From the NCBI GenBank assembly GCA_964247055.1, contig OZ176055.1, positions 7,564,001 to 7,628,000 of the forward strand: a DNA stretch of 64,000 nucleotides. The letters are read 5' to 3'. This document shows, one piece after another, positions 1 to 52,683 of the stretch; within the stretch, counting starts at the first letter, position 1, and each line of letters opens with the position of its first letter. This stretch comes from Paragordius varius (Eukaryota; Animalia; Nematomorpha). A model generated the notes under the pieces. The model saw only the letters and a program-made list of their open reading frames with translations. It ran no database searches and was not told the origin of the DNA. The position numbers and the translations under genes were made by a program.

Positions 1-14579
<14,579 letters not shown>

Positions 14580-15056: not shown

Positions 15057-19657
<4,601 letters not shown>

Positions 19658-24462: not shown

Positions 24463-27400
24463 TTAAAAAACAGGTATAAAGCGTTTAACTAATCGCTTAA
24501 ACCGATAATAATATTCGCTGTCACCACTAAGTTCTGGAAGGGGTGTCATTTGTCCAGGTGCTGGTGGAGCCATAAAGCCTTTATCAACACAGGTTTTACA
24601 ACAAAGATTTCGATAGTACTCATTTTTGCACAAACTAGGATCATTGATAGCACCACAACTTATGGCATCATTGTCTACGCAAGCTCCTGTAACGAAGGGG
24701 TATCCGGCTTCTTCGGAATCAACTCCACCTTAAAAAAGTAAATGGGGTATAAAAATAAAATTCCAAATAAAGGCTATAACTAACTTTTATTATCAATCTA
24801 GAAGCGTAAAACAGAAAGAGAATTAAAAAAGCAGATTTCATTTATTAGTTTGGTAAAATCAAGATACAGAATTTTCATTATCAATGTCAGCCTTGGAGAT
24901 TGTTAAAGCTTTTCCAGCAATAAATTTAAGTTCCTACCCCATCAACATAAAATGAGACTTATGTTTTATATCAAGTTAAGATATCAAAACCTCTAGCTCC
25001 ACCATCTGCCCCCCCGTACTCGTACCGCCCTTCACTTCCGCCTCGAACACCACCGCCTGCGAGGGGAGGCTGTACTGGTGTAACAGGTGTTACTTGCCCA
25101 TAGTCATCTCGACTTACGCCAATGACCTCGGTAACTGGACCTGCGTCATAGCGGGTTGGACCGAGGGCGTCGGTAGGAGGCAATCCCCCTTCTACGGCTG
25201 TCCCAAAATCAGATCCATCGCCTTCGATTCCGGGACGAGGAACAGGAGCCACTACACCTCCAGGTGGAACGACCTCATCTCGCCTATCACCGAGTCCAGC
25301 ATCGGCATCCTGAGTCCGACTAATACCCAGGTCTGTGTCTTCGCCCCCAAAGTCCGTGCTTCCTCCATCACTAATACTTTCAAGGTCGGCATCATCGTCA
25401 TGGAATTTTTCACCACCTATAATGGGTTTTAATTTATGTCAATTTTATATAATGGAAGTTTCGTAGTTAAAAGCATAAATTTTGAACAAAATGCGGAAAT
25501 TTTATATATGATTTCCAACATTCTATAATTTTTTAAGCCGCTCACTAAAAAACTAAATAATCACCACAAATCAATCATTTACTGAAAAATTAAGCGAAGC
25601 GTTGCAGGTGCGATTTCTGAGTGGGGGGACAGGGACATTTTGTATTTATTATAATTTTACGAAAAAAAGATGAATGGTTGCAAAAATAATTCAATACCTT
25701 CCATAATATTAACGCGAGTTTTGTCAGCAGCGGAAGCCAGGTTGTTAGAGGTTCGACATTCATATTCTCCAGCATCCCATTTGTTGGCCGCAGGTATAAA
25801 TAAAGTTCCATTTTCATAGATCTAAAAATATTTCGACATATGAACTTCAAAATTGCTAATTTCTTTAATCAAGCATTGTAAAATTTTACCTTGGTACGGG
25901 GATCATTTTCTGGAATCTGTGCTCCATCTTTAAACCATTGAACCTTTTCATAATTACCTGCACCAGCGCATTGTATCTTAATATTTTCACCCTTAAAGAA
26001 ATCATTTTTGCCACCAGGTCCAGCAGGGATTTTAGCGCCGACGGCATCTAGTTGAAAAAAATTCTAATTTCTTGCATTTGTCATTTTATTGGTAAAATAA
26101 ATCAAACTATTACATACCCTGAAGTTGGACGACAACTTCTCCACTTCCAGATTCACCGTCTTGATTGTTTACCAAACATTTGTACACTCCTTCATCTTCA
26201 GGCTTCACAGGGTCAATTACTAATGACATATTATCGAGTTGAGTGAATCGACTGTCATCCAAATCAACTTTATTGTCATCTTTAAGCCATAAAGCCTATA
26301 TTTAATATAGATTATAAATTAAAAGTACGCTTCTATAGAAAAATGGTAATTTATCAGCCTCTTTAGGATTTGCAAATATTCACATAATGTCAGTTTTTAA
26401 AATTTTGGAACCTATTCGAGCTAAGAAAGGATTTAAAGAAAATTGATATTACAATAGGATCCACAATATCCTGCATGGGGCAATCTATGACCAGACGACC
26501 GCCGAGAGCTCCTTGACCAATTGCGGAGGCTGCTGGTCTTGGAGTAACACCAGCTGCATCAGGAGATGGAGGTGGTCCCCCTAAAAAAATATATTTAATT
26601 TATAATTAAATCAATAAAATTTTTTTTGCTTAATATTATTTTAGTTATTCTCTATTTTTAGCGTTAAATTGTTATCTGTTCGTTATATTAAATTCTGGCC
26701 TATTCACATATTTTTGTTCCTCAATTGGTGATACAGTAACGTGGTTATAAAGCAAATTTTGTCCATAATTAAATAAAAAATAATGGAATTTCATCATTTT
26801 GTTGTTATTATCCGTACACTACTGTGCTGCCAATTGGACAATGCAAACATTAATATTCTTTGCAGAGTGAAATAAAATATAAATTTTCAATAAAACCAAA
26901 TAGTAGAATTGTGCCCCATGTACAAAAATATTTAACCTGGACCACCGGGTCCACCAGGTGCTCCGGGAGCCACGGGAACTCCGATTCCTCCAACAGGTGG
27001 AACGTAAGCACCTATAACAAAAGTATTCAAAGATTAATTTATGGAACAATAAATAATTAAAAGAGATGTCCACTGAAGTGACGGGATAATTAACCTAAGC
27101 AATATCCCTAATAAGTTTCAAATAAATGATCAAAATTACCGTCAACGCGAACTTTGATGTTTGAGAGTGCAGAAGGTCCGACGCCATTATCAGCGCGACA
27201 AATGTAATCGCCTGCATCGGCATTTGTAACTCCGTGGATTTTCAAACCACCACTCGGTAACTATAAATGGAAAAGTATTAATTTACCTACTGAAATATTT
27301 AGTCATCAAAATAATATTAAAATATACCATTTGCACACGTGAATCTGGTGTTATAAGGTTACGATCTTTGTACCAAACAATCCTTGGTTTAGGATTACCT

Positions 27401-30400
27401 TCTGTGGCACAAGGTAGCTCCAAATCATCCCCAGGCCTCGAAACAAATTCACCTGGAGCTGGTAGTATGGATGGTCCAACACCTCCTCCTGTATAAAAAT
27501 TTGATTATGTAAAATGATGTAAATTTTTGTTTTATCATTGTTTTATTTTTACATAGCTTATAACATAATTTCGATTTTAGGCGAGCCAAAATTCACAAAT
27601 AATATAAAAATATATTCATTATGACTTTTATATGCTTTTAAAATATTTTTTTCTTGTGTAAATTAAAACTGTCAGGAAATCGTAATGATTTTTTTAATTT
27701 TGCTATCAACATTATTATGTTCGCCCTCATTTTTCAAATTTATTCATATTTTTCATTTTTTATATTAATCATAATTTTTAATAATTACTTAACATCTTCT
27801 TAAAATACGACCTTTGCGCCGTTTTCCTTCAATAGTTACCATATCATCAAAGAATGAATTGAAAATGGAACATATATACGTTCAAAAAAACCAGAGCGTC
27901 AATTAATTGTTTCAAAATCTCGCGATAATAAACTGTGTTATAATGGCATTTCAGTATGATTAATTTTGGGAAAACATTTGGACAAATGGCCAATTTAGAA
28001 ATGCTAGAATCGGACTAGCTTTGATTGAAACCATGAAACTAATGATGCCGTCGGCAAACAATTAATCTCTTAGCCTTTTCCGAAAATAATCTGCCGACTT
28101 ATTGGAAATGTATTAGATACAATCAGCTTTTTTGTTTATTTAAATATATCCTTTTAATTTTGACAAAAACCCAACCAAAAACTGTGAACATATCGTTACC
28201 GGCAATTTTTTAATGATAAATTCTGTTAACAACATAACTAATTACTATAAAAGAAGATGCAAAATATCAGCATAAATATATCTGCCAATTTGAGTAAATA
28301 CCCCTAAAAATGACTAAACATTGTAAAAATACTAATCAGTGATGATATTACATTGGATAAATAAAAGATAGAAGGAATCAGTAAGTTACCTGGGGCTTGA
28401 GCGCCTGGCTGCTGTTGAGGATATGAAGGTCTTCGGCCCGCAGCGGCCGCGGCGGCGGCAGCAGCTGCTGCAGCTCCACCAGCTGCTATTGCACCAGCTG
28501 TTTGTGATCCTGGTTGACCGGGCTGACCGGGTTGGCCTGGGTAACCAGGACCTCCTAATAAAATTTATTCACATGTAAAAGAACAAATTAATTGATGCAA
28601 CTATGCGTGAGATAAACCAATGTTATTCTACTTAGTCATTATTCGTGTTATTAAATTTAAACAGAAAAAAAGAATGAGCAAGTAGAAAAAGGTTTTTCAT
28701 TAAAAGAGCTTTTATATAATTTTACCTGGATATCCTGGTGGGTATCCAGCTCTTTGAGCTTCTTGTTGTCTTCGCAACTGCTCCTCATATCCCGGAGGAT
28801 ATGGAGCTCCGGGCCTAGGGGGACTCGGGGGATATCCCGGCTGACCAGGGTATCCTGGTTGGCCAGGTTGTCCAGGGTAACCTGGTTGGCCAGGTTGTCC
28901 AGGGTAACCTGGATAAGCTGCTCCATAAGTTGGTTCCTGACCGGCTCGCAATTGTTGTTCTTGTATCTGCTGAGGAGTTAAAGGTCGTCCATCTGGCCCG
29001 ATGCTAGGTCGACGCCCTGGTTGCCCAGGAGCGCCAGGTTGTCCAGGGTAAGCTAAAATATAAAAATTGGTTTTAAATGCAATTTCCAAGTAAATTTTAA
29101 CTTTGCTTTTGCAGCACTATAAGAAATAATATGAGCAATTTATAAACACTACGAACAATAAACAAACCTGCTCCCGGTTGACCAAGGGCTCCAGGATAGC
29201 CTCCTATAATAGTTTCATACATACAAAATATATTTATTATATGGAATACAAATATATTTAATAAAATAATTGAATTTTGAATAATAAAGACCTGGTTGTC
29301 CAGGAGCGCCAGGTCTCCCAGGTGCTGCTCCTGGGTATCCGGGTTGTCCAAAACCTAGGTATCAACATGCGTAAAATTGCTTTGTTTTTATAATATATGC
29401 TGCTATCTTATTAAACAATTTATACAAATATCAAATCTATATCTTTTGGTGTTTTTTTAATATAATAGACGAAATTTTCTATGATTTGACAGAATAAAAA
29501 ATCGATTACGTAAAAATAATTACCTTGAGCATAACCAGGCATAATTATGGGTGGTTGCCCAGGTGCTCCGGGTTGTCCGGGTGCTCCAGGTTGACCTGGG
29601 GTTCCTGGTTGTCCAGGATAACCTATTTAAAAATAAAAAATGATAAAATTATTTTGTTATCTCTATTAAAAACTGTAAAAATAAACTTATAAAACATATA
29701 AAAGCGAGAATAAGCATAAAATCATCATTATATTTTATTTAAAACTTTACAAAATAATTTTAAAAAAATCCATAAATTGAATTTGAGGAATTTAAAAAAA
29801 GGATATTTATACAGGTTCTTTTCAAGTGGTTACGATTTTTAGATAAAAAAATACTAAAAACGTTGGCTAATAAATAACCTTACTAGAACATATTTTTTAG
29901 ATAAGTAGGTAGATCAGTATTTAATTTTTTCTATTGTTTTATTTATTAAACCACAGGAAGTAAATTAAAGTATGAAAAGATATTTTTATAGGATATGGGG
30001 TAGTTAAGTATAAATAAAAAGTTGTTTATAATTGTTTTTTCTAAACCATATCCAGGTCTTGGTCCACCAGGTCCTCCAGGGCCTCCGGGTCCACCAGGTT
30101 GTCCTGGAGCGCCAGCCTGACCAGGGTAACCTATATTCAAAAAATAAATTAATGCATATTTTGATCAAAATCTAATTACGTGGGCGACAAAATAGATTTT
30201 ATCTAATACAATGGTATAAATAGTAAATATAATAATTAGTATATTACCATATGCCGGTGGACCGCCAGGACCGCCGGGCCCACCAGGGCCTCCGGGGGCG
30301 CCAGGTTGTCCAGGAGCACCAGCCTGTGCGTAACCTATAAAAAATAAAGCATCTCCATTTAAAATCGAATTATTAGTATAAGGTTAATAAAATAGGAAAT

Positions 30401-33400
30401 AGTTTACAACAAACAAATAAGAATTAAGCTTATAATGATTGATAACTAGTTTATTACCATATGCCGGTGGACCGCCAGGCCCACCAGGAGCTCCAGGTTG
30501 TCCAGGAGCTCCAGCTTGTCCGGCGTAAGCTGCAAAAAAACATATATATATTTATATTTTATGAGGCTTAATTCAAAATTCTAATCTAGATAGCGTTACC
30601 ATATGGTGTAAAAGTTTAGTATCTTTTGGCTTTATGCAAATTATATATAGTAAAAACAAAAGTGATAAGCTCTCTAATATAGACTGCGTCCAAAATCAGT
30701 GGGTTTAAAAAATAACCTGATGAATGTATCAAGATTAGGGTGCTTTGGGTTTTGGTCCTTACGAGTCATTTCAAAAAAGTAATATACACATTTGTGATAA
30801 TAAGTGCTCCATATCAGAAAAATGCAAAATTCGCGCACATTGTTTTAAATAAAATTTTTTGGTGAAAGCTTGAAAACTTCATTCCAAAAAACTTTCACTA
30901 AAACATACATGTAAAAAACAAAGCAATATAATTATTTTACTCTTCTAAGATGGGCTGGTCCTCTAAAATTAGATACAATGCCGGGATGCAAGTTATGATA
31001 TCAAATAAGAATATATTTTTAATAATGCATACTTTTCTAAAAAATAATTTTTATCTAATATTTATGTGTACTTCATACTATTTTGAGTCATGATACAAAC
31101 GGTTTAAAAAACGGTTTATTATAAAAACACTTTTTTTCTATAATTCGATGCTGAACATTTTTATCACCTCAGAATTTTGAAATTGTATAAATTTTATTAA
31201 ATAAATTCAAAATTTTTATACAAACAAAAGTTTAACTAAATATTCTGAGGCGATAGAAATGTTTAGCATTATCGTATAAAAAAAGGTTTCAATATTTTAG
31301 CGTTTTAAACCTTTCCATCATGACTCCAAATAGTATAAAGCACGATCCAACAATTTTGTTAAATATTTGATTTTTAAAAAAGTGTGCATCTTTAAAAAAA
31401 ATTAGTTGATAATAAAATTTAGCATATATTTAAAATTCTTAGCGCAAAATCCCGGCATTTTTGCGTTTATTTTAAGAAAACTAGCCTATTTTAAAAGAGA
31501 AAAAAAAATTTGGGACTTTCGGAGGCCACATCCAAAATTTTTTTTTGAAAAATTACTTTTTATATGTAGTACATGATATAATTTAGTGATATTATTAAAA
31601 ATGAAGCATTTAGCTTTCCCCCAAAAAAATATTTCAAAAAACATTTTCTCATATGAAGCACTTGCCAATTTCTCGTAAGGGCCAAAACTAAAAGCACCAT
31701 AATATCCTGAATTTTCCTAGCATAATATATATATTTCATCAGTTTATATTTCTTGTTGACACTGTGTATATGGATTTGAAAAATATGCACAAAATGATGA
31801 TTATTTAAAAAAATATTAAAGAATAAATTCAAAATTTTTGTGAGATAGACAAGGAATTATTAAAATTGGTTGACATATTTTAATTAATAAGCTAAGCTAA
31901 CTATTCTAATTGAGCTAATATTGAGTCTCCTGCGATATTTCAAGAATACCTGCGAATAAATTTAAAAATTATTTCTGTTAAGATGAATGTACAGTGGTAT
32001 TTATATTATTTACGATTTAAAATATTTAAAAAATCAAAGTAAAAAACCCTTTCAGACAAAGCCATATTTAATTTATAATACCATAGTAAAAAACTAATAG
32101 CCAAATAAAATAACCGGAAACGCAACACTCCCAAATTATCATTGGAAAATTAATAAATCTATATTTTGCATTAGAACTTTATTTTTTATGACAAAAATAA
32201 TTTTTATTTGGTTAATAAATATAATTAGTACAGTACACCATTTTTAGTATCGTTTCAAAATTTTCATTTGCTCTTTTCAAGAGTTTTGTAATGACAAAAA
32301 TAAATACCATATCCTGGTCTGGCAGGTGGTCCACCAGGTCCTCCAGGCCCTCCGGGTCCGCCAGGTTGTCCGAAGGCTCCCGGAGTTCCAGGGACTCCTG
32401 GTTGTCCAGGGTAGCCTAATAGATATCAAATGAACAATAATGTTTATTATTTTATAGAGCAATATAATATTAATAATTAAACATTCGGGTATGATAATTA
32501 CATAGCCATTGAGAAAATTATCACTTGGATGCAAAACATTAATTTCAGTCCTTCGATTCAAATTGGGGTCGTTAGATACCCCAAGGGTTGTTTAAAATTA
32601 AATATTCAAAAAATATGGAAGTAATTGAAACCATGGCTAAATTTTGCACTTTTATAACATTAATGAATCGAAATATAAAAATTTATTCAATACTTGGAAT
32701 TATACTTATTCAGAGGTAAAACCCAAAAGTAAAAATTTAGCCAACATGAATGACATGCGTGCATAAGCTAAATATATCATTTGCACTTCAAGAGTGTTCT
32801 TGAACATTTCAAGTTGGACTTTGAACAATTCAAGTTGGTCCTTGAACAGTTCAAGTTGGTCCTTGAACAATTCAAGTTGGTCCTTTATTGTAAAATAAAA
32901 ATGGCGTCAAAGTAGTTTGATGCGGAACTTTTTTAACTAATTTTATTTAGGTATTTTGGTTTAATTATATAATTTTTATCAGGATAGAAGCATAAATTTA
33001 AATAACCGTTTCTTTCAGTAGTTTTTAAAAAATATCAACCTGAATGTTTTCTGGGGTATTTAGATACTCCAATTCAAATCGAAATAAAAAAAAGAGCCCC
33101 TTATCTATTATCTTAAGCAATAATTAAATTAATATTACAATTGAATTTTTGCACTTCAAGAGTTTCCTTGCACACTTCTCGTTGGTCCTTGACAATTTCA
33201 AATTGGCCCTTAAAAACTTTAAGTTAGCTCTTAAAAACTTCTCCAAGTTGGTGTTTAATAAGTTTAAATTTAACCATAATTTTTGCATGTATTTTATTTT
33301 ATTATTTTTTAACCTAGTTTTCTTATAATATATATATATTCATTTAAAATAATATTTTTTTATTCAAAAACCACTTTTGTTCAAACTAATTTTTTCTAAT

Positions 33401-36400
33401 TTAATACAATTATTAACTAAATTTTTTAAATAAAAAATTGTAATTAATAACCCAGAAAAATATATTTATTTAAATGTTAAAATCTTATAATTTTAAAATA
33501 ATTTTATAAAAATTAACAAAGAAATACGGTTTTTTGAATTAAGTTTATGTTAAATAATGAAAATAGGTTTAAATGATAAAAAAGATGAATGATACACGAA
33601 TTGATTAATAAAAGTTAAAAACAAAACAAAGAGTTAAAGGACCAATTCAACTTGAAGTGTTCAAGGACACTCTTGAAGTGCAAATGATATATCAGCAGAA
33701 AGACAGTGCAAATTTTAAATAAGTGTATTATCGTATAATCATACCATATCCGGGTCTAGGAGGTCCTCCAGGTCCGCCGGGTTGTCCGGGTGCACCAGGC
33801 ATACCAGGTGCTCCAGGTTGTCCGGGATATCCTAAGAACAATACATTTTGGTCATGATTAAAAAAATATGGATATAGCTTTATGAAGTATTCAAAATTAA
33901 CAATTATTAATCAAGGTATTTAAATAAGTATCAAATGCCTTGAAAGTATGAATGTTTTGTGGCATCATCCTAAAAATATTCATCATAATTTGTAAGTTAT
34001 TTGTATTTTTATGATACAGATTATGGATAAAATATTGACCTGGAACTCTTCAAGCAGTCATAACTTATTTTAAATTGATATAAAAAAAGGTTATGTTATG
34101 TACATTCTACTTTGATAGCGCATTTGCACCTTATCAAACCCATAATTTTTTTTTATTGGTTAATATTTAAAATCAATAATTTTAAACCAGGGGCGCCGGG
34201 CATTCCAGGCTGACCGGGGGAAATCTGTCCGGCGGGCCCTTGTGGTGGATATGATCCAGGCCATGGCTGACCAGGAGCTCCAGCAAAGCTTGGCCTTCCG
34301 CTAGGGGGTGCCCCGCCTGCCGCCTGAGCCCTCAAATATGCTGATTGAAGATGGGGTTCAATAGGTTCAAGGCATGCGCTTCCTCCACACGTGTCACTAC
34401 AACATTTAGCGTTAGCTGGGCAGAAGGCGTCATTTTCACATTTTCGATAGTTAATGGATTTACCCTCCGAGCTAATTTTGGGTGGACACTGTCCGCCTGG
34501 TGGCGAGGATGCTGCTGGACAGGTACCTGGTTTCGTTTTGGGTTTACACACCGGCTGAGGTATGCATTTGGGTCCACCAGCTGAGGCAGTTTGTCTATCG
34601 CATCCAGGTCCCGAGGACGGAGTTCTTTCCAACAGGCATTGAGAATCTGCCGGGCAATTATGCTGTGCACATGGATTGTGACAATCACATGTAGGGCAAC
34701 CAGAACCAGGTGCTATATCAAATCCATAAGGACAAAATCGGGTGCAAGCCACTCTTGGACAATCTTATAATTGAATGTTTGAGCGAGAATTATTTACGAA
34801 TTTATAAAATAGAGAAAAAAACAATACTCGGATTCGTCATTTCATCTTGTGGACCAGGTTGTTGTGCCATAACATTATTGTTTGATTGTGGGTATGGTCC
34901 ATGAGGACTAATTAATTACATTGATTTTAAACAATAATTAATTTAACGTTTATATGCATATGCATGTACATATTGAAGGCATATATTACTCATATTGTGG
35001 TCCTCCAGCGCCACCTTGCTGCATGTAATCAGCTGCAGCTTGATCACGTTGTGGATCAAAGGTTGGGTTCTGAGGGAAAGCTATATTGGGTGGTTCGATT
35101 GCTCCGCTAGGTCTACGTGACTGTGAATTCACTGAGGTTTGTTGGCCAGGTGAAGAATAACTACCTGGTATCCCGCCTCCAGTCAAAGAATCTGAATATG
35201 GAGGCGGTGGAATTCCATCTCCAACACTTGGTCTCCTACCAGCATATGAATCACCAGGTTGTCCTGGTTGACCTGGTGCTCCTGGCTGACCAGGTGCGCC
35301 AGGAATACCGGGATACCCTGGAGGATATGCCTGACTAGGTCTTCGCGAAGGATCCTGACGTGATGCGCCAGATGATCCAGTAGCAGCGCTAAAAACAGGG
35401 GGACCACCCAAACAAACCTCTTGGCATTCTTGTGCAGAATGAAATCTATTACCATTTCCCATGCAACCGCTGAACGAAAAATTCTTGCAAGCACTGCCAT
35501 CAAAGTACCACATGTTGAGGTTACTGTTACAGGGTCCTCGGTCCATTCCACTTTGGCAAACATCTACGTATGTTAAGATCAAAATTATAATAAGTATATA
35601 TTTCTATTGTTAATCATAATAAATAATATACTTATATCTTTGTATTGGCCGCACGTTCGTTCGCAACGTTCTCGTGTATCGAATCGGTTGGCATTTCCAC
35701 CACAACCACTATATCTAAAAGGTTTACAATCCTTTGTAGATGGGTCAAAATAAAAATTTAAATGAGTTTCCGAACAACTTCCAGCATCTCTGGGCAGAGA
35801 ACACATGCCTACAATTAGGATTGAAAATTAATAAATTAATAAGCAGCCAATTCTTTAATAGCGTGTAGTTTAATTAAATAATCTTACTATCATCTGGCTT
35901 TCGCCAAAGAGGAGCGGAATGCGGAGCTAAATGGCCAGCTTGCTGAGATTGTTGTTGTTCATGCTGCCCTTGATGTTGCTGCTGTCTCTCTTGGGAATAT
36001 GGATAGGGCATGGGTGGCGCTCTAAAAATTGCACAAAATTCGGATAAGTAAAATTTTCTCTATATAATAAGTTTTTGACCGGTGCCTTTCAACATAATAT
36101 ATCAAGGCACATTCAAATTTTTACACTAAATAGAACGCGCACGCACATATTTATAAACCAACAAAACCAAAAATTTCAATCGGATTTGGACATTTTTTAG
36201 TTAAAAACCTAGAGAATATATAAAATAAAAGCCATACCCAGGTTGAGGTTGCATTTGTCGTTGACGCTCTGCTTCTTGTCGAGCTCTTTGTTCTTGCTGT
36301 TGGCGAATTATCTCATTTTGATGAGTTTGTTCTTCGTATCTATATAAGATGGTTTTATCAATATTTTTTTGCATTATATAAAAGTGTGTGATATAAACCA

Positions 36401-39400
36401 AATGAATTATACAATTATAATTGAACATTCTTTGATGTCCTGTCTTAAATACCATGATAATATAGTCATGCAATTTTGTATAGGAATATTAATATATCCC
36501 TTACAAACTATCATAATAAAATTTTTACAAGGGTAAATGAATATGATAAACGAGGTACCCAGGTTGTCCTGGTTGAAAAACAGGAGCGCCACCAGCTTGA
36601 ACAGGTGGATAAGAGGGTCGCCTAGAACCCGAATCACCACTAGAGGCTGCGCATGTCGCCTCACATTGTTGTTGAGAGTCGAAACGGTTTAAATGGTCTC
36701 CAGGACATCCGCCATCCATAAACTGTTTACATGACCGAGTCATGGGGTCAAAATGCCATTTGGGGACCCAACCTGTGCATGATTGCGTTTGAATGGGAGA
36801 TAGGCATTTTGCTGCGGGACTACCACCAGATCCTATTTTAATTTTAGGAAAACATTATATTCTATTTTACTTATTATAGTTGATTCATTGTTTATAAAAT
36901 GTATCATGAATACTCTATCTAGAAATTTCGGCTAATATTTTATACATTTAGTTTATTAACCATTAGTATTGTTTGTAAAAAAATACCAGGTTGAAAAGAT
37001 ACTCTTCGTGTGATCTCATATTGGGGGCTGCCGGGAACGGGCGCAGGTGCTATAAACAACATGAATTGTACAAAAATACGATATTTTTAAAATAAAAAAT
37101 ATGTTAACAAAAGGATTAACCTGCACCTCCAGCCGATCCAGGTTGACCAGGGGCTGCTCCTGGCTGAATAATATCTTTGGCCGCTTGTTCGGGTTGACAT
37201 TTTAGTTGACAGTACTCGAGTGAAGGGAAATTATTGGCATTTCCGCGACAACCGGCTTTAATTTTAACGGAGTTATATTGATTAAATATTTAAACGCAAA
37301 ATTTTAATGGCAAAAAGTAACAAAATAACATACTAAAAATGAACTCGAGACATTTGTTTTGAATGTAATCATAGAACCATCGTTTATTTTGTTCTTGGCA
37401 ATTACCAGGATCCTTAGGCAAATTACACTCTAAAAAATATTAACTATCAATATTAATAATAATTTACCGGTTGTATGTTATTGTAGAAATTTAATGGTTA
37501 TATATCCTATTTTTTATTTTTTTATTTTTTATCCTTTATTTTGCATGGATAGTTTATTACAGATTGTTAATCTCGCATAATTACCGTTCTATAAAAGTTA
37601 AAACCTCATTTAATTTTTATATTCAATCAAGACTTCTAATAAAAAATTTACCCGGCAAAATTTTGCTTTGATATCCAGGAGGTCCATGAACCATATCCAC
37701 TTTTGGAGGGGGTTGAGCCTCATCAAATGTTTCCCCACTGTCTCCTTCACCGCCATCTTTTTAATATTCATGATATAGGTAAGAAATTTTTAAACAAAAA
37801 ATAAAGATAGAAACCTTTTTCTCTGAGTTTGATGGGAACGACATAATCCACATTTGGATGTGTACACTCATAATTGCCATAATCACTTGGTTCAAGGTTT
37901 GGAATTATAAGTACACCATTTTCAACCCTAGCTTTTGGACTAATAGGTTCTCCCGATTTCATCCATTGTATTTGAGGTTGACCTGGAGCAATGCGAACCG
38001 TTCCAGATGGACCGTAGGCAGTACAATTAATTTGAACAGTTGATCCCAATTCAGCATTGCGTATTCCGGGTAACACAAATAAATCTGTGATCGGATTTTC
38101 TCCACCAGCAGCAACACCTCCTTTAATATCATTCATAAAATTTTTACCGCAAAAAAATTAAAAATTATATTATATATATAATAAAAACGGTTCCAAATAT
38201 TAATATTTGTGTTACCAGAAGGTGGAGGAGGAGGATACTGACCAGGTGCTGGATACTGGGGTTGCCCTTGAGGTTGACCTTGGCTTCCGCTTTGTTGATA
38301 TCTAGGGTCAGCCTGTTGTGGGCTGCCGCCAGGTGCTGCACTACCGCATTTAGCGTCACACTCTTGCTTGCTTTCAAATCTATTATATACATTATTTTTA
38401 AACAGTTCATAATATATTTGCACTTGTTTGAAGTGATAAATAAGCAAAAACGTATACCTGTTGTTAGAGCCACCACATCCACCATAATAAAATTGTCTAC
38501 ATTGACCATTTTCAAATGTATATTTCATTTTGTAATCGGCACACGTTCCTTGCACAGCGGGAAGATCACTGCAAACTAATGGTTAAATAAAGTTTAGCAT
38601 TAATTAAAAATAATATGATTTTAAGTTTAAAAACGCGGGTATCATAAATCTAACTTCCAGCCGATGGTTGATTTGGTTGTTGGGCCGGAGGATACTGGGG
38701 CGCTCTCTGTTGCTGCTGCTGTTGTTGCATTAGCCTAATATAGTAAATCCCATCAATTAATAAAGTCAAGCAAGTAGCGTTATAGGATGTGGACTTACAT
38801 AAATAAGATACACACAGAAAGTAAGTATCTTTTTTCTTACCTAGGTGTATCTCAAAATAGTATACCTGGGATCATATTGTTGAGGTTGAGGTTGTGGGGG
38901 CCGTCCTTGTTGCGCTGGTTGAGGATAAGGATAAGGTCGTGAAGGTTGAGGGGCTTGTTGAGGCCCGCTAGCCGGAGGTGGCGGTAAATAGGCTGGGTAA
39001 GGGGCCGGAGCACCACCATATGGCGCATGAGCTGCTGGCTGTGGTTGTCCATATGATTGGGATTGTCTTCTTGAAGCATCTATAAAAAAATAATATTTTA
39101 CCATCAAAATATACAAATGCGTACATATGGATACAGTACAGTGTCTCTAATGATAACTTTAATAAGATCATTCTATTGAATTATGGATTTTATCAAAAAC
39201 TAGGGATGCATATTTTTGGATCCATAATAATTATTGTTATTAAATATATTTAGGATGCTAATAAAATATCCCAAAAATGGATTCTTATTTTCCCAACATA
39301 TGTTAAAGAGATTTAAAAACCAATAAATACCCTCGGGATCATCATGATGTCCGTTTCCATTGTCATCGTCAGGGAGACAAAACTCACGACAATCTGATTC

Positions 39401-42400
39401 AGATAGGAAATTATTGGCATTCCCACCACATCCGGAATAAGTAAATTGCTGACAACGTCCCCCTGAAAAGGAGTATCTGGGTTTTGAGTTTGCGCAATTT
39501 CCTCTGTCCATAGGTGGAAGGGAGCAAATAGTTTGATCTGAAACATTAATACAAATTATATTTTTTGTTTTCAATCATTTCACTTATTACTTGCCCCGCT
39601 TTTGATTATAAAATTTTAATTCGGTTTTAATAAATTTAAGTATTATGAATCAATACCCGAATCAACTCCAGCACTCTGACACGATGCTTCACACTCTTGT
39701 TTGCTATTGAATTTGTTTGGATTTCCTCCTGAACCTTTGTATTGAAACGTTTGGCAATCATCCGTGAATGGATCAAAGTACCAACGAGGTTCTGACCCAG
39801 AACCTGAGCCAGGATCTTTGGGTAACATGCATATTTCTATGTGTGCAAATAATTTTATTTGCTATACATTAAAATTTATCCTACGTTTATTAATCTTCCC
39901 TATTTTGAACAAAGAGTTTTACAATAACTTAGCTAATAAAATGAATGTATTTACTGGCCAAATTATGGTCGGAACAGATAATCTGGCATTCTTCCATAGA
40001 TTGGAATATATTATCCGAAATTTCACCGCAACCAGAAAAATTAAACGGTACGCATTGCCAAAGTTTAGTGTTAAAATAAAAGAGTTCAATAGCTTCACCT
40101 TCACAGCCCTCTTCGACGGGTTCGATTTTGGGATTAGGAGATAGGCACACACCTTAAATTGAAAATCACATCAAACATTACATGCAAGTTGTAGTATATT
40201 TACATGCATTATATAACCATTAAATTTTTTATCAATCCTTTGATAATTCCGTATGACATAAATTATTAAACATTAAATTTTTCCAGATAACATAAACAGT
40301 AAAGAGAATTATTATTGGTGAATAACAAGAAATAGCAAAAAATAACATTAAGATAATAATGTCTTTGCTGTATGTGCTATTTGGCAATAATTAATGAAAA
40401 ACTTGCAATGTTTATTTATTGATATTGTAAATAAAATAGAGCATGCAAATAGTTTTTTGAAAACAAACATTCGTACTTTTTTCAGTTGGAGGGCATTCTC
40501 CCTCGCAATCTTTTGCCAAGGATTCATCTTTTTCTAAGCCGGAAAAAATGCACACAAGTTAAAACCTTTCTTAAGAAATGTTCACAGCAAACATATGTAT
40601 GTAATGATAAGTAATTATCCAATTATATAATAAATGAGCCAAAAGATATATATACATAATTGCGCAGTAGGAGATATGAAAATAAAAGTAGTTTAAAATT
40701 TTCTCAATTATGGATTAATTAAACTTCCACACTCGTTAAAACAAAATAAACAACTTAAAATGTTTTTCGGAAGGATAAATTTTGAAAGTAATATTTATAA
40801 ATAAAAATATATTATACGGGCATCCCCAGGCCGATCTGGTTTAGGCGGTGGTGGTGTGCTTCGCCCTTGTCCAGGTAAACAAGCCTGTTCACATTTGTTT
40901 TGGGTAATAAATTTATTAGCATTGCCTCCGCAACCGCTATATACAAATGGGAAACATCCTTTGGCTTCGGCATCGTGATAAAAAACAGGTATGCTTTCAT
41001 CGCAATTCCCAACGGCCAAAGGTAGTTGACAAGCATCTTCGAACAAGACAAAGATTATGTTAATTATGTAAAAAATCATAAAATTATACACAAACATGAT
41101 TTAAATTATTATTATCTAACAAAGTTTAACTTCAATGAGTTGACTATCGCAAAACCTCATGCACATTTGGTTTTTATGGGTTATTAATGATAATTAATAA
41201 TATTAATGTACCCAAATCCGAAAAATTTGCACTTAAAAAAATTTTCCATTTTTGTTATTTTGCGGCAAAGTTATCGAAAAAAAATAAAAGAATTTGAAAC
41301 AAATACCCATGTAATTTCAAGAGAATCAAAAACTCACAAATATGTTTTCCATTAGAGGAAAAAGCGACGCAATTTTTTGAAATTTTATTGCTCATTTAGT
41401 TAAAATTTATATAATACTAATATTTCCTCAAATAGCTTGCTAAAAATTACTTTAATTTCGAAACTTTTCCGTATAATTTATCCAAACAAAAACCTCAAAA
41501 AAATTGTATTAAAATATTATTCCAAGGGTATTAAATAATTTCGCTTCCATATTAATTCATATATTCATTGGTTAAATAATAAAAGTTTCCACTTATACTA
41601 AAAAATTAAATAATTTAAAGTTATACCAATAATACATATAAAATAAATAATTAATTTTAAGGTGTATTTGAATTATCATAAAATTAATAAACTATAATTA
41701 TGTCAAGGAATGATTATAACAAAAAAGTTAAGCAGCAAACCAAATATTAATTGACATTTCACTAATAGAATGAACAGCAGATAGCAGACAACAAAACATC
41801 TCCTAGACTAGAATAATATCCATTTTTATAACCAAAGATATAGCTGTTTACTGTTATTAGAGATATCTATTAAATATTTCATGCAAAAATGCAAATTTAC
41901 TAATTATACAGATTTGAGAATATATTTATACATAGATTTAAACGTATGAAAAAAATTTCGTGCTTCAGATAAAAGCATGCAATGAGAAAACACACTACTT
42001 TCGAGTTTGTCTGGTGTAACACAAAACTTATGACATTCATCTTTGCTTTTAAAACGATTATTATTTCCACCGCACCCACCATACCAAAATGAACGGCACT
42101 GCGCCGCAGACGTGCTATAATGCCAATACTTTTTAAAGTCGTTGCATCTACCGTCATCCTTGGAAGGTAGTGCACAATCTTTGGGCTCTATACAGGGACA
42201 CACACACGCATATATATTTGAACATTGTTGGGTTATAAATACACACACATATTACGTAAATTTTTGGGGTTCGTTTATATGTTTTGAAAATCTCAAAATA
42301 TATAATGAAAAGCCTTCAGAATCCAACAAATATGGATTAAACGCAATGTAAGAGAAATAAATGCAAAAACTATAACGGGTTAAACAGCTGTAAAAATAGT

Positions 42401-45060
42401 TTGTCTACATTTCAAAACATGGAGGTAGCTTATTTTTTATTATATATCTTTGCTAGTATTAAAACCATAAATATATTAAAACATCCAATGAGGCTACAAT
42501 AATATATTTGTGGCTATTTTATACTATAAGTTAGTTTATGCTAAACCTTTTCTTTCATTTAATGGAGTCAACTTAAATATTATTCAAAAGATCCTTTGAC
42601 ATAACATTATTATTGTATATAATACTACTAGATTTTGTGGAACCTTTAACCTTAATATTATAAAATGTAATATGTATGACATGCGAAATGTAACACTCAT
42701 TTTCATCCGACAAAATTTAAAAGGTTTTTTTCTTGAAAATAATTTGTAAACACACACATCAACAAAGCAAACATTATATTACACAAGATTATAACCCAAA
42801 TACCATACATATTATTATATTTAACAATACTTTTACTTACTTCGATCAACTATATCACTACCATCATGTAGGGGAACAGCAGGTGGTGTTACAGGTTGAT
42901 TGGGTTGATAACCCGCCCCCGGAGGTCCATACTGTTGAGGAGGGCCGCCTGGAGGCCCACCACCAGGATATGGTTGCGCCCCATAAGGTTGAGGTTGGCC
43001 CTGAGAAGGGGAATAAGGTAGAGGGTATTGCTGTGCTTGGGGAGCCGGATAACCCGGAGGATAGCCCATTTGAGGTGGGTATCCTCGAGCCGATTGTTGA
43101 CATTGTGGATCCTGTGGATACTAAAAAATTAGTAATTTTACAAATGTAATGAAGCAACAATAAATTTGTTGACAAACAATTGATAAACTAAAATCTGGTG
43201 AAATCTAGATATATATTTAGATTTTTACCAAATAAAACTCCGAATGTGACCGGAATGTACCTAGCAATGAATACAAATATGACAGAATTGAGAGAGAGAG
43301 AGAGAGAATACAGTTCTATCAGCGGAATTTAGCTTAATAGAATTAAAACTTTTTTAATCATTTTGCAACCAAAAAGTATTCTAGAAACGGTTCAGAAACC
43401 GAGGTACGCTTCAAAAATGGAAACTAATAATATTATTTTACAAATGTTTATATAGCAAACAATTTTTATTTTTCATATTTTTTAATATTGATTTACAAAA
43501 TGATGTTTGGATTTAATAATAAAATTCTATTATATTTACGGCTATTTATTCAAATTTAGGATAAAAGTTAAAAACCTTAAAGCCCAACCTAGAATCATTT
43601 TACCAAACATTGGCACCTTTGAAACAAAATATTTTTAAATCAAAATCAAAAGTGACCATTTTTTTCTAAGAAAAAGTAAAATATGTATTTATTATATTAT
43701 ATCATCAATTAAAAAAATAAACGGAATAATTTTATACCCTACAACAGTCCGACGTTTAATTCTTTAAAACCGCAAAATGTACGATAACAGTGCGTAACTA
43801 CCACAAAATCTACAAAACAATGACTAAAGGTCCATACAAAACAAAATTTTTAATAAAAAGTTTTAGTAAAAATGGAGAAAATTGATAATTGACTATCTTA
43901 GGGTTCTCTGTAAGATCTTTATCATCATACCTAAAGGTCAACAATCCTTTTTTAACTATGTTGGGAAATTAATTTGTGCAAAACTGATCCAGTTATTAAA
44001 CGGATTTTATTGATTTGATTTAATTTACTTTTAAACATACGCACACCAAGCACAGCTACAATATCATTGTAGCGAAACAATTTTTTATCCCGATTTTTTA
44101 TTATAATAGTATATGATAACTCGAGGAAACTAATGATATTTGATAAATATAAATGAAATGAAATGAAAATATAATCATTTAAAATAATGATTATTGTAAT
44201 AAGGTCACATATGCGCTCTACCAACGCTAACCAAGCTTTTCGAATAAAATTTAAAGTTACGGTTTTTACATGATGATAGCTTAAACTATAAAAAACTATC
44301 CTTTCTTAATTATACAATTTTTTAGCATTCATTTTCGAATGAGAATCATGGAAAATTTACGATATTTTAATAAAAAAACAATAATTGAATTTGCAAATCA
44401 GTTATGTACATAAAATTAATATATGTGTGATGATGCATCAAATTTTTTTAACATAATTGGGTTAATTCTGTCATAATAGAAATCATTGATTATTTACTTT
44501 TAAACAAGGAATGCTGTTGATTTTAAATAATGCAATAAATTCGGTTAACTAATTAAATAACCAAATTTCAAAGTAAAAAAATAAATATTAATTTTAATTT
44601 TTTACGTTATGACCTTAATGAATCTAAAATAATTTATAATTTTAGTTTAAAAAATGTAACCGATTATGTTTAAACTAGATTATAATTTTAAGGGCGATAA
44701 AACATTATATTTCGATTTGATAAAAATAAAAAAAGAATTCACAATACCTAAAATATTAAAAAGAATAATAAAAAACTGACATATTAACCAAAAATTCGGA
44801 ACGGTTTTCCGAGCGAACTCGGTTTCATTACTATATAAAATATATTTAAATCTCCAAGGTTTCATAATTTAGTTTTAAAACTTAAATTATGACAATTTAA
44901 TAAAACTTTGAATCTATTCCAATTAAATATTTAATAATAATCATACCCTGCGACAATCCACTCCGCCAGCCAACACATATGAATCGGGTTGAAATATCGA
45001 ATATATGCATAAAAAGATAAAAATAAAGGATAAACTATATGACTTTAAAGGGGGAAACAT
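24463..45060 (-). CDS. Secreted papilin-like Kunitz/WAP/Ig/PLAC matrix protein with interrupted Gly-X-Pro block (~42 exons)
   Basis: Exon 1 (45060-44947) encodes signal-like MFPPLKSYSLSFIFIFLCIYSIFQPDSYVLAGGVDCRR and splices in phase 0 to 43120 (YPQDPQC...). Then 10 Kunitz domains (42187-35410), one internal Ig (38125-37815), antistasin-like + WAP (34770-34190), GXP exons (33833-28390), three Ig (27490-25700), an acidic exon (25416-24991) and PLAC (24728-24463, TAA at 24463). The Kunitz-WAP-3Ig-PLAC order is papilin-like. Symbol withheld because the N-terminal papilin cassette was not seen. Confidence 0.88.
24560..24700 (-). other. PLAC domain
   Basis: CVDNDAISCGAINDPSLCKNEYYRNLCCKTC fits the PLAC cysteine pattern (..LC...YY...CC.TC). 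Confidence 0.85.
25700..27490 (-). other. Three C-terminal I-set/C2 Ig domains, each split over two exons
   Basis: LPCATEGNPKPRIVWYKD...DAGDYICRADNGVG; IDCPMQ...ALWLKD...DEGVYKCLV; IQCAG...VQWFKDG...DAGEYECRTSN. Confidence 0.88.
30729..31710. mobile_element. Old ~1-kb imperfect palindrome (foldback element) in a papilin-like intron
   Basis: Mirror-matched blocks: TCAAGATTAGGGTGCTTT/AAAGCACCATAATATCCTGA, CCTTACGAG/CTCGTAAGG, AATGCCGGGAT/ATCCCGGCATT, GAGTCATGAT/ATCATGACTC, ATCACCTCAGAAT/ATTCTGAGGCGAT. Centre near 31210. A partial right-arm copy lies at about 56530-56730. Confidence 0.78.
32550..33083. mobile_element. MITE family C (CTTCGATTCAAATTGGGGT TIR), interrupted by a family-B end
   Basis: Same TIRs and interior as 55961-56511. 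Its middle section is replaced by the B left end at 32777-32885. Confidence 0.75.
32777..33687. mobile_element. MITE family B composite (outer ends TATA|TCATTTGCAC ... GTGCAAATGA|TATA; second left end at 33148)
   Basis: TIRs and 21-bp TCAAGTTGGTCCTTGAACAAT units; 33148-33687 is an inverted copy of 5523-6076. Confidence 0.78.
34190..34770 (-). other. Antistasin-like + small Cys module + WAP four-disulfide core
   Basis: CPRVACTRFCPYGF....GCPTCDC; NPCAQHNCPADSQC; KPGTCP...CENDAFCPANAKCCSDTCGGSACLEP. Confidence 0.8.
35410..42187 (-). other. Cluster of 10 Kunitz/BPTI domains separated by P/Q/G/Y-rich linkers, with one intercalated Ig domain
   Basis: F.YxGC.GN.NxF....C...C signatures at about 42050, 40920, 40000, 39710, 39410, 38470, 37220, 36700, 35690 and 35450. 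Ig QINCTAYG..IQWMKSGE..DYGNYEC at 37815-38100. Confidence 0.92.
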
Positions 45061-47384: not shown

Positions 47385-47644
47385 TGAGATGTAAATTGTT
47401 AAAATAGAAATAATAATTAATTTATTAAAAATTTCGTGATATTTATACTTTTTTATTAATGAAAATTTTAACATGCATGTGCGTCACAATTGTAAGAATA
47501 TGTCTTTTATTCTAATATATATATATATATGAGAATTCCATGAATAATGACGCACGAACATAAACGCCAAACGCGATTAATATAATAATATGAGGTAAGA
47601 TAAATATACAATGATTCAATGTTGTAATATCAACTAACATATCA
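47385..47644 (-). repeat. 3' LTR
   Basis: Matches 52390-52683 apart from (TA)n length and roughly 5-10% scattered differences by eye; preceded on the minus strand by purine-rich GAGGATGAAGAGTA. Confidence 0.9.
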
Positions 47645-47659
47645 TACTCTTCATCCTCT

Positions 47660-50600
47660 AAAAAACGCTTAGGAGGTTTGCGGACTCGATCTGGGTAACG
47701 CCTGGGAGCCTCACTCTGCTCACCATCCGACCTCAGTTGTTGGGCATGTTTCCTCATCTCTTTCCCATCTTCATCCTTCACTTCGTACGATAACGGCCCC
47801 GTTCTTACTTCAACCGTACCCGGTCGCCATCCTCTAGATGTCTCATTTTTTATAAATACTGGCTGAGAAGGTGTAAATTCTCTTAAGGGTCTCGGTGGTG
47901 TACTTTCTTTAGGCGCTTCTTTATCTTGCAACCAATTCAACGGTGTGTTGATGTTCCTCTTCAAAAACAACGATGCGGGGGTCGTCTTTATCTCGTTATG
48001 CCATGAGTTTCGATGGGCCAATAATATAGCCTCTTGACCCTTCACGCCAGTCATCATCGTAGAAGAAATCTTAATTTCAACGTGTAAATCACTCTTTCCA
48101 CCAAACCATTTGTCCTTGGGTGGTAGGGAGCAGAGGTCACATGACTAATGTTCCAGTTTGTCATCTTTTCCCGAAAATTGAACGATTTTAAATAAGTAAC
48201 ATTATTAGATACTAGCATTCTTGGAAAACCGTAAGAGGAAAACTATTTCTCCAATTGTTTCAAAATCACATCAGATGTAATACTGCCAAGTATCTCCACC
48301 TCCACCCATCTTGAGAATAAAACCAACCAATACTTACCACACATGGGACCCGCGATGTCTACATGGAGTCTTTCCCATATTCCCACATTGAAGTTCCATT
48401 TATATACCGGATCCTCAGCAACGTTCACCCTGTTCCTCTGACAACACTGACAGTCGTGTACTAACATTTCAATGTCCTTATCCATTCTGGGCCAAAACAC
48501 CAACGACCTGGCTGTGTTTTTCATAGCAACGATCCCCGGATGTCCAACATGAAACCAAGCCAAAATTCGTCTTCGCGCAGCTGTTGGGATATCCAACCGA
48601 TCTCCAACATATGCGAAACCATCAACTTGTTTGAGATCATTCACGGCTTTGTATGCGGATAATTCCGGTGTTGACCAATCATTATTTTTAAGTGTCATAC
48701 GTAGTCGTTTTAACAGGTTATCCTCCAAACAATCTTTTTTTATTTGCGTTTTATTTAAATTTAAATCCACGAATGCGATTTGTCGGATTTTTTCGGTCAC
48801 ATATTCATCATCATTGGCTAATGGTGTCTGACTCTTTTCGGGAAGTCTTGAAAACACATCGGCCATGTTTGTCGATCCCGCAATATATTTCATATCAAAA
48901 TCATACGCGGTGGCCTTTTAGATCCATGTTAACAATTTACAGTTTTTAATATCACTTAACTTCCGATTGTTTCCGAATAAATGAACTAACGGCTTATGAT
49001 CTGACCAGACCTCACATTTCTGTCCATAAATATAATAATGGAATTTATCTAACCCAAATAGCAAAACCTGTTTCCAATTCAATTACAGAATAATTTTTCT
49101 CTGCATTCTGGCATTTTCTTGACGCGAATGCAATTGGTACCATTCTTTTATTCTCCATTTGCAGAAGTACAGCTCCAAAGCCTTTTGTAGCCACTTGTAT
49201 TATTGTTTTATTATTTGTGTTATAAGTGGCAAGTAAAGATTCTCTTGATATTAGGTTTTTTGCTTGCTTAAATTCATTTTGATGTTCTTGTGACCATCTC
49301 CATTCCTTTTTGGATCTTGTTAGTGCATGTAGATTCCTAACTTTGACATGTAAGCCAGGAATAAAACGTTCATAAAAATTGAGCAATCCCAAAAATGATT
49401 TTAACTCAGTTTTATTGGTAGGTGTTGCACATTTAGCAATGGCGTCGATTTTATCTTGTCCCGGCCGAATTCCTTGTTTTAATAACTCAAAACCCAAAAA
49501 TTTAATATTCTCCTGATACAGTTTCAATTTACCTTTTCTTAACGTAAACCCGAATTTTTGTAACCTTGTTAGGGTCTCGCTAAGATTTTTATCATGTTAA
49601 TCTTTCGTTTTACCAACAATCAAAACATCGTCGAGATAAGCCATTGTGCCCCTGCAATCTTTGAGTACCTCATCCATTACTCTCTGTAAAAGCATGGGAG
49701 AAACCAATCCAAATGGTAGGCGATTAAATTGAAAATATCCCATCGGGGTAGTAATAACTAAATATTTTTTACTTTCCACATCCACCGGAATTTGCAGGTA
49801 TGCGTCCTTTAAATCAATGGACGAGAACCATGTGGATCCTGCACATTTAGACGCGATCGTGTCAAATGTCGGGATAATCTGAGATATGTTCTCCATCAAA
49901 GAATTGATTGTTACCCGGAAATCAGCGCACACCCTAATTTCCCCATTAGTTTTTACGACGTTAACCGTAGGAGTCGCCCATTTCACGTGGTGTTGTGTAG
50001 GATCAACGGGACTCACTATTCCCAGGTCCATCAGTCTCTGCATTTCCATCTCTACTTTACTCTGTAGTGCCAATGGAATTCGCTGTGCAGCGCAGACTTT
50101 TGGTATTGCATCTGATCGCACATACAATTTGACAGGATCACCGTTGTAACAACCCAATTTCCCGTTAAAGAGTTTTGGAAATCGCTTGAATACATCATCA
50201 TGACCATTATTATTATTAGATGTTATTTGATTAACTTTCACGTTATCCAGTAAGGTCATGCCACAACCAATGATCCAAGGCAGCCCAAATATCGGAGATA
50301 GCTCTTCTTCCGTCACAAAAGATTCTAATTTCTTCGTGATATTTCCCATTGTTACATTGGCAATTGTTTTTCCCAAGAGTTTGATTGGGTTGTTTCCGTA
50401 GGAAGTTAATCTGAGAGCACTTTTTAGTGACGGTGCTCCCACCGTCTTCCAGACATTTTTATTAATGATAGAAGCAGCAGCTCCAGTATCAAAAACCATA
50501 CTGACAGCTTGGCCATTAATCGTAGCGCAAATGTTCGCTTGTGTGCCCCATTTATTATAATTAGCGTTTATATTATCACTATATCGTTTTTTATGGCGAC

Positions 50601-50730
50601 ACAATGCCTGAAAATGATTTTTTTTATTACAATTGTGGCATATTTTTCCCAACGCGGGACATTGTGTTGGTATGCGATTTACCACATTTGCCACATCTCC
50701 GCTTCCATTTATTATTATTGCCATCATCAT
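47660..50730 (-). pseudogene. pol (protease, RT, RNase H, integrase), frameshifted
   Basis: ORFs 49597-50730, 49045-49527, 48243-48893 and 47512-48057 carry successive pol motifs in different frames. Confidence 0.92.
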
Positions 50731-50765
50731 TTTTATATTCCATATTATTTCTTTTATAATTATTA

Positions 50766-52378: not shown

Positions 52379-52387
52379 TCGTCGCCA
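52379..52387 (-). other. Primer-binding site TGGCGACGA
   Basis: 2 nt after the 5' LTR; complementary to a tRNA 3' end ...UCGUCGCCA (tRNA-Ser(GCU)-like, from recall). The gag ATG follows immediately. Confidence 0.75.
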
Positions 52388-52389
52388 AA

Positions 52390-52518
52390 TGAGATGTTAG
52401 TTTTTAAAATAGAAATAATAATTAATTTATTAAAAATTTTGTTATATTTTTACTTTTTTATTATGATAATTTTAACATGCATGTGCGTACAATTGTAAGA
52501 ATATGTCGTTTATTCTAC

Positions 52519-52573
<55 letters not shown>

Positions 52574-52683
52574 AATTCCATGAATAATGATGCACGAACA
52601 TAAACGCCAAACGCGATTAATATAATAATATGATGTAAGATAAAAATACAATGATGCAATGTTGTAATAACAACTAGATATCA
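52390..52683 (-). repeat. 5' LTR with expanded (TA)n
   Basis: Direct repeat of 47385-47644; followed by TSD AGAAG at 52684-52688. Confidence 0.9.

Follow-up and report, generated by a model that had tools for sequence, protein, structure and literature searches.

We analyzed a 64,000-nucleotide stretch of the genome of the nematomorph Paragordius varius (hereafter the window; GenBank assembly GCA_964247055.1, contig OZ176055.1, corresponding to C6:7564001-7628000 in the assembly searched, which has 110.6 Mb in 44 contigs) and identified on its minus strand, from position 45060 to position 24463, a gene for a predicted multidomain extracellular protein. The gene is probably the single papilin-family gene of this genome, with the arthropod-type C-terminal layout, without the papilin cassette (TSP1 repeats, a Cys-rich region and an ADAMTS spacer) and with elastomer-like linkers. 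Papilin is defined by this ADAMTS-like cassette and, in C. elegans, works through it (10.1101/2025.02.10.637428). If the reading is true, a papilin that is cassette-less yet intact and under selection would amount to a natural dissection of what the Kunitz-WAP-Ig-PLAC half does alone.

Gene model, domain order and known relatives

The window consists of AT-rich animal DNA with a GC content of about 25-43% when measured in 2-kb windows. Stop-free, GC-richer segments of the minus strand between 45060 and 24463 encode recognizable extracellular domains. The exon chain was built with a simple dynamic-programming exon finder trained on stop-free segments, and three boundaries were corrected by eye. 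The predicted chain had no internal stop over its roughly 2,484 codons, which were spread over 44 exons; the introns were GT-AG throughout and nearly all in phase 1, while at least two small exons (40533-40477 and 31706-31662) were doubtful. A re-run of the exon finder that allowed 20-nt introns over-split real domains and was discarded. Domains were called by Pfam scans of the stop-free exon segments, piece by piece, and homology searches were performed exon by exon, the joined spliced model being used only for composition and run counts. The features along the gene were as follows (positions of the window):

44947-45060, minus: putative exon 1, an ATG and a 38-aa signal-peptide-like sequence with a phase-0 donor AGG/GTATGA (predicted)
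42841-43120, minus: exon 2, low-complexity sequence with P 28%, Q 17%, G 15% and Y 11% (without Pfam family)
42187-41996, 41036-40818, 40152-39955, 39836-39657 and 39537-39331, minus: Kunitz 1 to 5 (PF00014, E 4e-20 to 2e-09)
40533-40477, minus: doubtful 57-nt exon in the region of Kunitz 1 to 5 (exon model)
39079-38866 and 38734-38655, minus: two Pro/Gln-rich linker exons (without Pfam family)
38575-38458 and 38379-38216, minus: Kunitz 6, two exons around a 78-nt intron, with a P/Q/G tail (PF00014)
38120-37815, minus: Ig domain that separates Kunitz 6 from Kunitz 7 (matches to Pfam Ig_3, Ig_2 and I-set; donor corrected by eye)
37756-37652, minus: short acidic/Pro linker exon (exon model)
37429-37334 and 37255-37121, minus: Kunitz 7, two exons (PF00014; splice sites read)
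37049-36987, minus: linker exon between Kunitz 7 and 8 (exon model)
36832-36559, minus: Kunitz 8 (PF00014)
35888-36339, minus: two Gln/Glu/Arg-rich linker exons (exon model)
35808-35632, minus: Kunitz 9 (PF00014; the exons of Kunitz 9 and 10 gave E 1e-20 and 5e-14, in the order listed)
35563-34990, minus: Kunitz 10 and a 140-aa P/G/S/Q linker with three RRPS motifs (PF00014)
34907-34828, minus: short linker exon (exon model)
34763-34188, minus: exon with 20 Cys that encodes an antistasin-like unit (Pfam Antistasin, 21.9 bits), WAP (28.3 bits) and then the start of the Gly-X-Pro block
28390-33831, minus: about 11 symmetric phase-1 exons with (G)YPGQPGAPG...PGY units, a 12-Ala run and two Gln/Glu/Arg helix-like motifs
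31706-31662, minus: doubtful exon in the Gly-X-Pro array (exon model)
27488-27328 and 27260-27140; 26580-26453 and 26295-26118; 26047-25890 and 25821-25698, minus: three C-terminal Ig domains, two exons each (I-set, Ig_3, ig)
27011-26937, minus: Gly/Pro linker exon among the C-terminal Ig domains (exon model)
24991-25416, minus: acidic Asp/Gly/Glu-rich exon, 142 aa (without Pfam family)
24463-24728, minus: last exon, with PLAC (Pfam), a tail rich in Pro and containing the acidic motif ..SEYYY.., a basic C-terminus and a TAA stop

An initial annotation, made from the letters of the sequence, had listed ten Kunitz domains with an Ig among them, an antistasin-like unit with WAP, a Gly-X-Pro/poly-Ala block, three Ig domains, an acidic exon and PLAC; the Pfam scans and the exon chain agreed with this list. 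All ten PF00014 matches were above the cut-off, and Kunitz 4 was found to lack Cys14 and Cys38. Five of the six half-domain exons of the C-terminal Ig domains gave Ig-type Pfam matches, with none for 26580-26453. The PLAC match had a score of 25.6 bits (E 2e-05), which is 0.8 bit below the 26.4 cut-off, and its six Cys were all in PLAC spacing; the PLAC exon occurs as a single copy in the genome. The PLAC profile run over the whole genome gave no match, not even to the PLAC of the papilin-like gene itself, and this search was hence uninformative. At the other end of the gene, the open frame of exon 2 starts exactly at its acceptor (43120), so that the ATG must come from an upstream exon. The 45060 exon joins exon 2 in frame and, when read directly, resembles a signal peptide.

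The cDNA-confirmed papilin of the tick Rhipicephalus microplus consists of TSP1, an ADAMTS spacer, four TSP1, ten Kunitz, WAP, three Ig and PLAC (PMC3160391). The window gene shares with it the ten Kunitz followed by WAP, three Ig and a C-terminal PLAC in identical order, which bears out the earlier description of the gene as papilin-like, whereas the TSP1, the ADAMTS spacer and the four further TSP1 of the tick protein are absent. Since the last four blocks of tick papilin occur in the same order and the PLAC exon is single-copy, the gene is best read as the papilin-family gene of this genome; as predicted, it holds the tail two-thirds of a papilin. The two also differ in what lies between the domains. 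The Kunitz domains of tick papilin are nearly contiguous and its gap between WAP and Ig1 is about 44 aa (PMC3160391), whereas the window gene has long P/Q/G/Y linkers, an Ig between Kunitz 6 and 7, an antistasin-like unit before WAP, about 440 aa of Gly-X-Pro/Ala sequence between WAP and Ig1, and the 142-aa acidic exon before PLAC.

Other known proteins share parts of this architecture. C. elegans MIG-6 is ADAMTS-like by its papilin cassette, and its function in neuronal maintenance, as tested, resides in the cassette and the lagrin repeats rather than in the Kunitz domains (10.1101/2025.02.10.637428). Like the predicted product of the window gene, MIG-6/papilin is a secreted matrix protein with Kunitz domains, its long isoform also having Ig and PLAC; unlike it, the window gene holds only the non-cassette half. 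For a Bombyx gene model, BmSPI57, the domains given are Kunitz, Ig, WAP and PLAC, with neither TSP1 nor spacer among them (PMC3278429). This likeness to Manduca lacunin/BmSPI57 lies in the domain content of a gene model; BmSPI57 may be a partial model whose N-terminal part was annotated separately as BmSPI58, and a Gly-X-Pro block is not reported for it. C. elegans MLT-11, a large secreted protein of the apical matrix and cuticle, has ten Kunitz domains, a thyroglobulin and three Lustrin domains (PMC13181417). It resembles the window gene in its number of Kunitz domains, ten, including one without the second and fourth Cys, and differs in its thyroglobulin and three Lustrin domains and in lacking Ig, WAP and PLAC. 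MLT-11 identity was rejected because none of the exons scanned gave a Thyroglobulin_1 or Lustrin match.

A homologue search with the Kunitz 10 exon returned one match, a tick 'papilin-like' protein of 347 aa with 43% identity over 25% of the query. This protein (P0031, from Dermacentor andersoni) has three Kunitz domains and a GYPG/PGQPGAPGQP low-complexity tail, so the pairing of Kunitz domains with a Gly-X-Pro tail is not unique to this genome. The PLAC exon gave no match in a search whose length filter excludes full-length papilins, and this blank says little. When protein representatives were searched with the antistasin-WAP exon, 30 matches were obtained, the best with 43% identity. Eight of these were scanned with Pfam and were multi-WAP, antistasin or Kunitz inhibitors without Ig or PLAC; one match of 213 aa had the same antistasin-then-WAP order and lay on a 1.8-kb contig without context.

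We also noted [G/S]-R-(R)-P/Q-S motifs, mostly RRPS, eight of which occur in the otherwise low-complexity linkers of the model (exons 39079-38866, 36832-36559, 35563-34990 with three, 34763-34188, 29052-28726 and 28554-28390). The motifs may mark a site of modification or processing; alternatively, they may be left over from a shared origin of the linkers.

Genome-wide distribution of the papilin cassette

The initial annotation stated that the gene has no N-terminal papilin cassette, that no TSP1-like exons were seen between 45060 and the next gene (57437) and that a separate canonical papilin should be sought elsewhere in the genome. We searched the whole genome with the spacer profile (PF05986) and obtained 13 matches, of which 12 were in tandem on C2 and one was on C4, with none on C6. 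The gene on C4 has the HEIGHNLGIPHD protease motif, TSP1, a Cys-rich region, the spacer and many TSP1, and is thus an ADAMTS. Each spacer on C2 has its own metalloprotease active-site exon 4-6 kb upstream, and these exons are 94-100% identical among the copies. The Reprolysin profile missed the protease array on C2; all 12 copies were recovered when the active-site exon served as a protein query. All 13 detectable spacers therefore belong to ADAMTS metalloprotease genes, and no separate canonical papilin was detected by the profile searches.

At the locus itself, the TSP1 profile gave no match on C6 within megabases of the window. The check for upstream TSP1 exons was extended to 51 kb (the window to 64000 and C6 to 7658000), where no TSP1 core motif was found on either strand. 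This stretch includes a degraded LTR retrotransposon, which occupies about 47.5-52.7 kb. A lenient tblastn search of the same 51 kb with the genome's own ADAMTS ancillary domains found no relic of the cassette, the best E value being 0.6. Taken with the genome-wide result, the absence of the cassette from the locus, as claimed in the annotation, and from every non-protease gene visible to profile searches is well supported at the DNA level. Two other loci were considered as hidden papilin heads. The F-spondin locus on C7, which is the sole other locus with TSP1 and Kunitz, was rejected by its spondin-N sequence, and a TSP1-only gene on C1 was rejected as it has neither Cys-rich region nor spacer.

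The 12 genes on C2 (C2:1302743-1423513; loci L001-L010 and L014) form a tandem ADAMTS array with about 10-kb spacing, which represents a recent large expansion in a genome without a detectable ADAMTS-like protein. A cassette-less papilin would thus also raise the question of how the animal, having expanded its ADAMTS set by these 12 genes, copes when no ADAMTS-like partner is present.

The Gly-X-Pro block and the predicted product

The block between WAP and Ig1 occupies about residues 1496-1932 of the model and is coded by the end of the WAP exon together with the short symmetric phase-1 exons that follow. Its composition is G 29%, P 26%, A 14%, Q 11% and Y 7%, so that Pro and Gly together make up 55%, and it contains a run of 12 Ala. 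The six clearest repeat exons read roughly (G)Y-P-G-Q-P-G-A-P-G...G-G-P-P-R-P-G-Y, and a Gly codon is split at each joint such that the units meet as ..PGY-G-YPG... The Pro/Gly/Gln/Tyr style of the block also fills exon 2 and most of the linkers between the Kunitz domains. The repeat exons are diverged duplicates with 60-81% DNA identity, a single adjacent pair reaching 81%. Their pS was about 0.63, which is near saturation, with pN about 0.14, pN/pS about 0.22 and conserved splice sites. The near-saturation of synonymous sites, the low pN and the conserved splice sites indicate that the periodic sequence is no recent microsatellite but one that selection has maintained; the repeat exons are old duplicates under purifying selection. 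A 21-nt minisatellite was found in two introns of the exon array (32759-32915 and 33127-33241).

The initial annotation described the block as a collagen-periodic Gly-X-Pro rod. A large block between WAP and Ig1 was indeed found, while the rod was not upheld. We counted 12 Gly-X-Y runs of at least four triplets in the block, the longest having 11, and the register breaks at almost every exon joint (PPRPGY-G-Y). Within the runs, Pro was in the Y position in 79 of 86 cases and never in the X position. The Pfam Collagen profile (PF01391) scored 23.0 bits, below its 27.2 cut-off, and no trimerization, NC or Cys-knot domain was seen beside the block in the Pfam scans of the flanking exons. Kunitz-bearing collagens such as vertebrate collagen VI alpha-3, VII and XXVIII combine Kunitz and Gly-X-Y in one matrix protein; their triple helices are long and uninterrupted, they carry VWA or FN3 domains, and Kunitz occurs in them once, at the C-terminus. 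In the window gene, by comparison, Gly-X-Y runs do not exceed 11 triplets and the Kunitz array is dominant.

In PMC5703643, which cites Rauscher 2006, a high combined Pro and Gly content is given as the hallmark of hydrated, disordered, self-assembling elastomers. Based on this hallmark, we read the block as a putative elastic, PPII-type spacer with cross-linkable Tyr pairs, and it should better be called an interrupted Gly-X-Pro elastomer-like block than a collagen rod. The likeness to elastin, resilin and flagelliform/MaSp2 silk lies in the very high Pro and Gly content, GPGXX/GXP-like short repeats, a stretch of poly-Ala and Tyr at regular intervals; it is compositional only, with no sequence homology. 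All of the repeat exons split a Gly codon in phase 1, so that any subset could be skipped in frame, in which they resemble the exons of the elastin gene.

We then read the P1 residues (those after the second Cys) of Kunitz 1-10, which were N, D, E, S, A, A, Q, T, S and N. None of the ten was Lys or Arg, as compared to six of 15 among the other Kunitz domains of the same genome, a rough control. This fits an array that would be mainly structural or binding rather than one of classical protease inhibitors.

The proposed course of change is as follows. The TSP1, Cys-rich region, spacer and further TSP1 of the N-terminus would have been replaced by a short signal-peptide exon and the Pro/Gln/Tyr exon, the domains would have been spread apart by Pro/Gly/Gln/Tyr low-complexity linkers, and about 11 duplicated phase-1 exons between WAP and Ig would have added roughly 440 aa of interrupted Gly-X-Pro and poly-Ala sequence. 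The product would most likely be a secreted matrix protein in which disulfide-locked domains sit on hydrated, disordered, elastomer-like strings, and the Tyr pairs at the repeat joints may allow oxidative cross-linking. The matrix binding of the Kunitz/Ig/PLAC half would probably be retained; without the cassette, the protein would not act through the part that mediates ADAMTS interaction in other papilins. On this reading, the Gly-X-Pro/poly-Ala exon array is a candidate elastic module of the matrix that is new in evolution. That an ADAMTS regulator had been converted into a structural, elastic or adhesive polymer was also suggested by the initial annotation. The lack of basic P1 residues and the Pro and Gly content give this some support, and the conversion itself is a step that we infer. 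A more far-reaching reading, which we consider rather unlikely, is that the one papilin gene shed its head and was rebuilt as a cross-linkable, elastomeric or partly triple-helical matrix polymer, in a lineage with at least 13 ADAMTS and without a detectable ADAMTS-like protein. In such a rebuilt polymer the non-inhibitory Kunitz, Ig and WAP domains would act as rigid nodes and the Gly-X-Pro/poly-Ala cassettes as springs, tunable by in-frame exon skipping, and the polymer would serve the basement membrane or the cuticle of a worm that is very long and thin.

Alternative readings and gene neighborhood

Several points weigh against a single cassette-less papilin with elastomer-like linkers. The exon chain, the start at 45060 and the single-gene status are all predictions from DNA, and the exon finder needed hand corrections and leaves the doubtful small exons in the chain. 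In the 14 kb upstream of exon 2 there were seven candidates with an ATG, a hydrophobic stretch and a phase-0 donor, and chance signal-peptide-like first exons occur about once per 2 kb in the AT-rich DNA here. The 45060 candidate had the best signal-peptide layout among the seven, and a start at 45060 is plausible; given the chance frequency of such open frames, it is a start that we infer. The profile searches were done exon by exon on the best candidates only, so that a strongly diverged or finely split cassette elsewhere could escape. No orthologue was found with exon-sized word-search queries, which cannot reach full-length proteins. Pro/Gly/Gln/Tyr tails seem common on matrix proteins, as in the tick Kunitz protein, and short stretches of 8-11 Gly-X-Hyp triplets might still assemble into triple helices, provided that the chains were held together.

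The last of these points leads to an alternative in which the block is a true though interrupted collagen, hydroxylated and assembled from three chains with short triple-helical segments, comparable to minicollagens and nematode cuticle collagens, such that the protein would be a trimeric papilin-collagen hybrid. X-Pro-Gly is the substrate pattern of prolyl 4-hydroxylase, and this pattern is present in the 79 of 86 Y positions that hold Pro with Gly after it. The runs of up to 8-11 triplets, the purifying selection on the periodicity in spite of near-saturated synonymous sites, and a weak similarity to genuine collagen exons found elsewhere in this genome also point to a collagen, and the short Gln/Glu/Arg helix-like motifs that flank the longest GYPGQPGQP run might nucleate a helix. 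However, the Collagen profile score is below threshold, the register is broken at nearly all exon joints and no NC, trimerization or Cys-knot domain was seen beside the block. Bona fide collagens have Pro in X positions and charged residues within the runs, whereas here X-position Pro is absent and the charged residues, 23 in 437 aa, are almost entirely outside the Gly-X-Pro runs. A similar PGQPGAPGQP tail, moreover, is carried by a small tick Kunitz protein of monomer type. We therefore regard a collagen as unlikely and favor the elastomer-like spacer. A further alternative would place the cassette far upstream or elsewhere, through a very long intron, nesting or misassembly, and splice it to exon 2, with the 45060 exon being a chance frame. 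The features of exon 1 are not unique, the retrotransposon lies just upstream, and in the tick gene prediction overlooked the first TSP1 exon, which lies on the far side of a nested helicase gene (PMC3160391). Yet TSP1 and spacer signals were lacking in the 51 kb upstream on either strand, two plus-strand genes fill 58.8-75 kb, C6 has no spacer match and every spacer of the genome is paired with a protease exon, and a distant cassette thus seems quite improbable. It is also conceivable that the region is made up of two genes, one from 45060 to about 34188 for a secreted inhibitor of multi-Kunitz/antistasin/WAP type and another from about 33831 to 24463 for a matrix protein with Gly/Pro-rich sequence, Ig and PLAC. 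The halves are joined by prediction only, the largest introns (up to 1.3 kb, with minisatellites inside) fall in the repeat block, and silkworm models list the Kunitz/TSP1/spacer and Kunitz/Ig/WAP/PLAC genes apart (PMC3278429). Against this, the exons from WAP to Ig all run phase 1 to phase 1, the WAP exon reads straight into Gly-X-Pro sequence before its donor, and a stop-terminated exon and a new ATG/signal-peptide exon are neither needed nor seen. The cDNA-confirmed tick papilin has the same order of ten Kunitz, WAP, three Ig and PLAC in one message, and we consider a split into two genes very improbable.

The upstream neighbors of the papilin-like gene are on the plus strand, opposite to it. 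They are a TMEM87/GOST-type seven-transmembrane gene (window 58853-62644, plus) and a large EGF-rich matrix or receptor gene that probably bears laminin-G domains (extended coordinates 66500-75000 on C6 beyond the window, plus). Between them and the papilin-like gene there was only AT-rich DNA and the degraded LTR retrotransposon, which spans about 47500-52700 on the minus strand with pieces of aspartyl protease, reverse transcriptase, RNase H and the integrase zinc-binding domain in several frames, and which has LTR-like repeats near 47510-47629 and 52475-52696. Downstream of the papilin-like gene, window 2-14252 (minus) holds a kinase gene, by eye MAST/greatwall-like, in which the catalytic domain is split and long inserts are rich in Ser and Asn, and window 16338-18545 (plus) carries what by eye is an AGC-type kinase gene.

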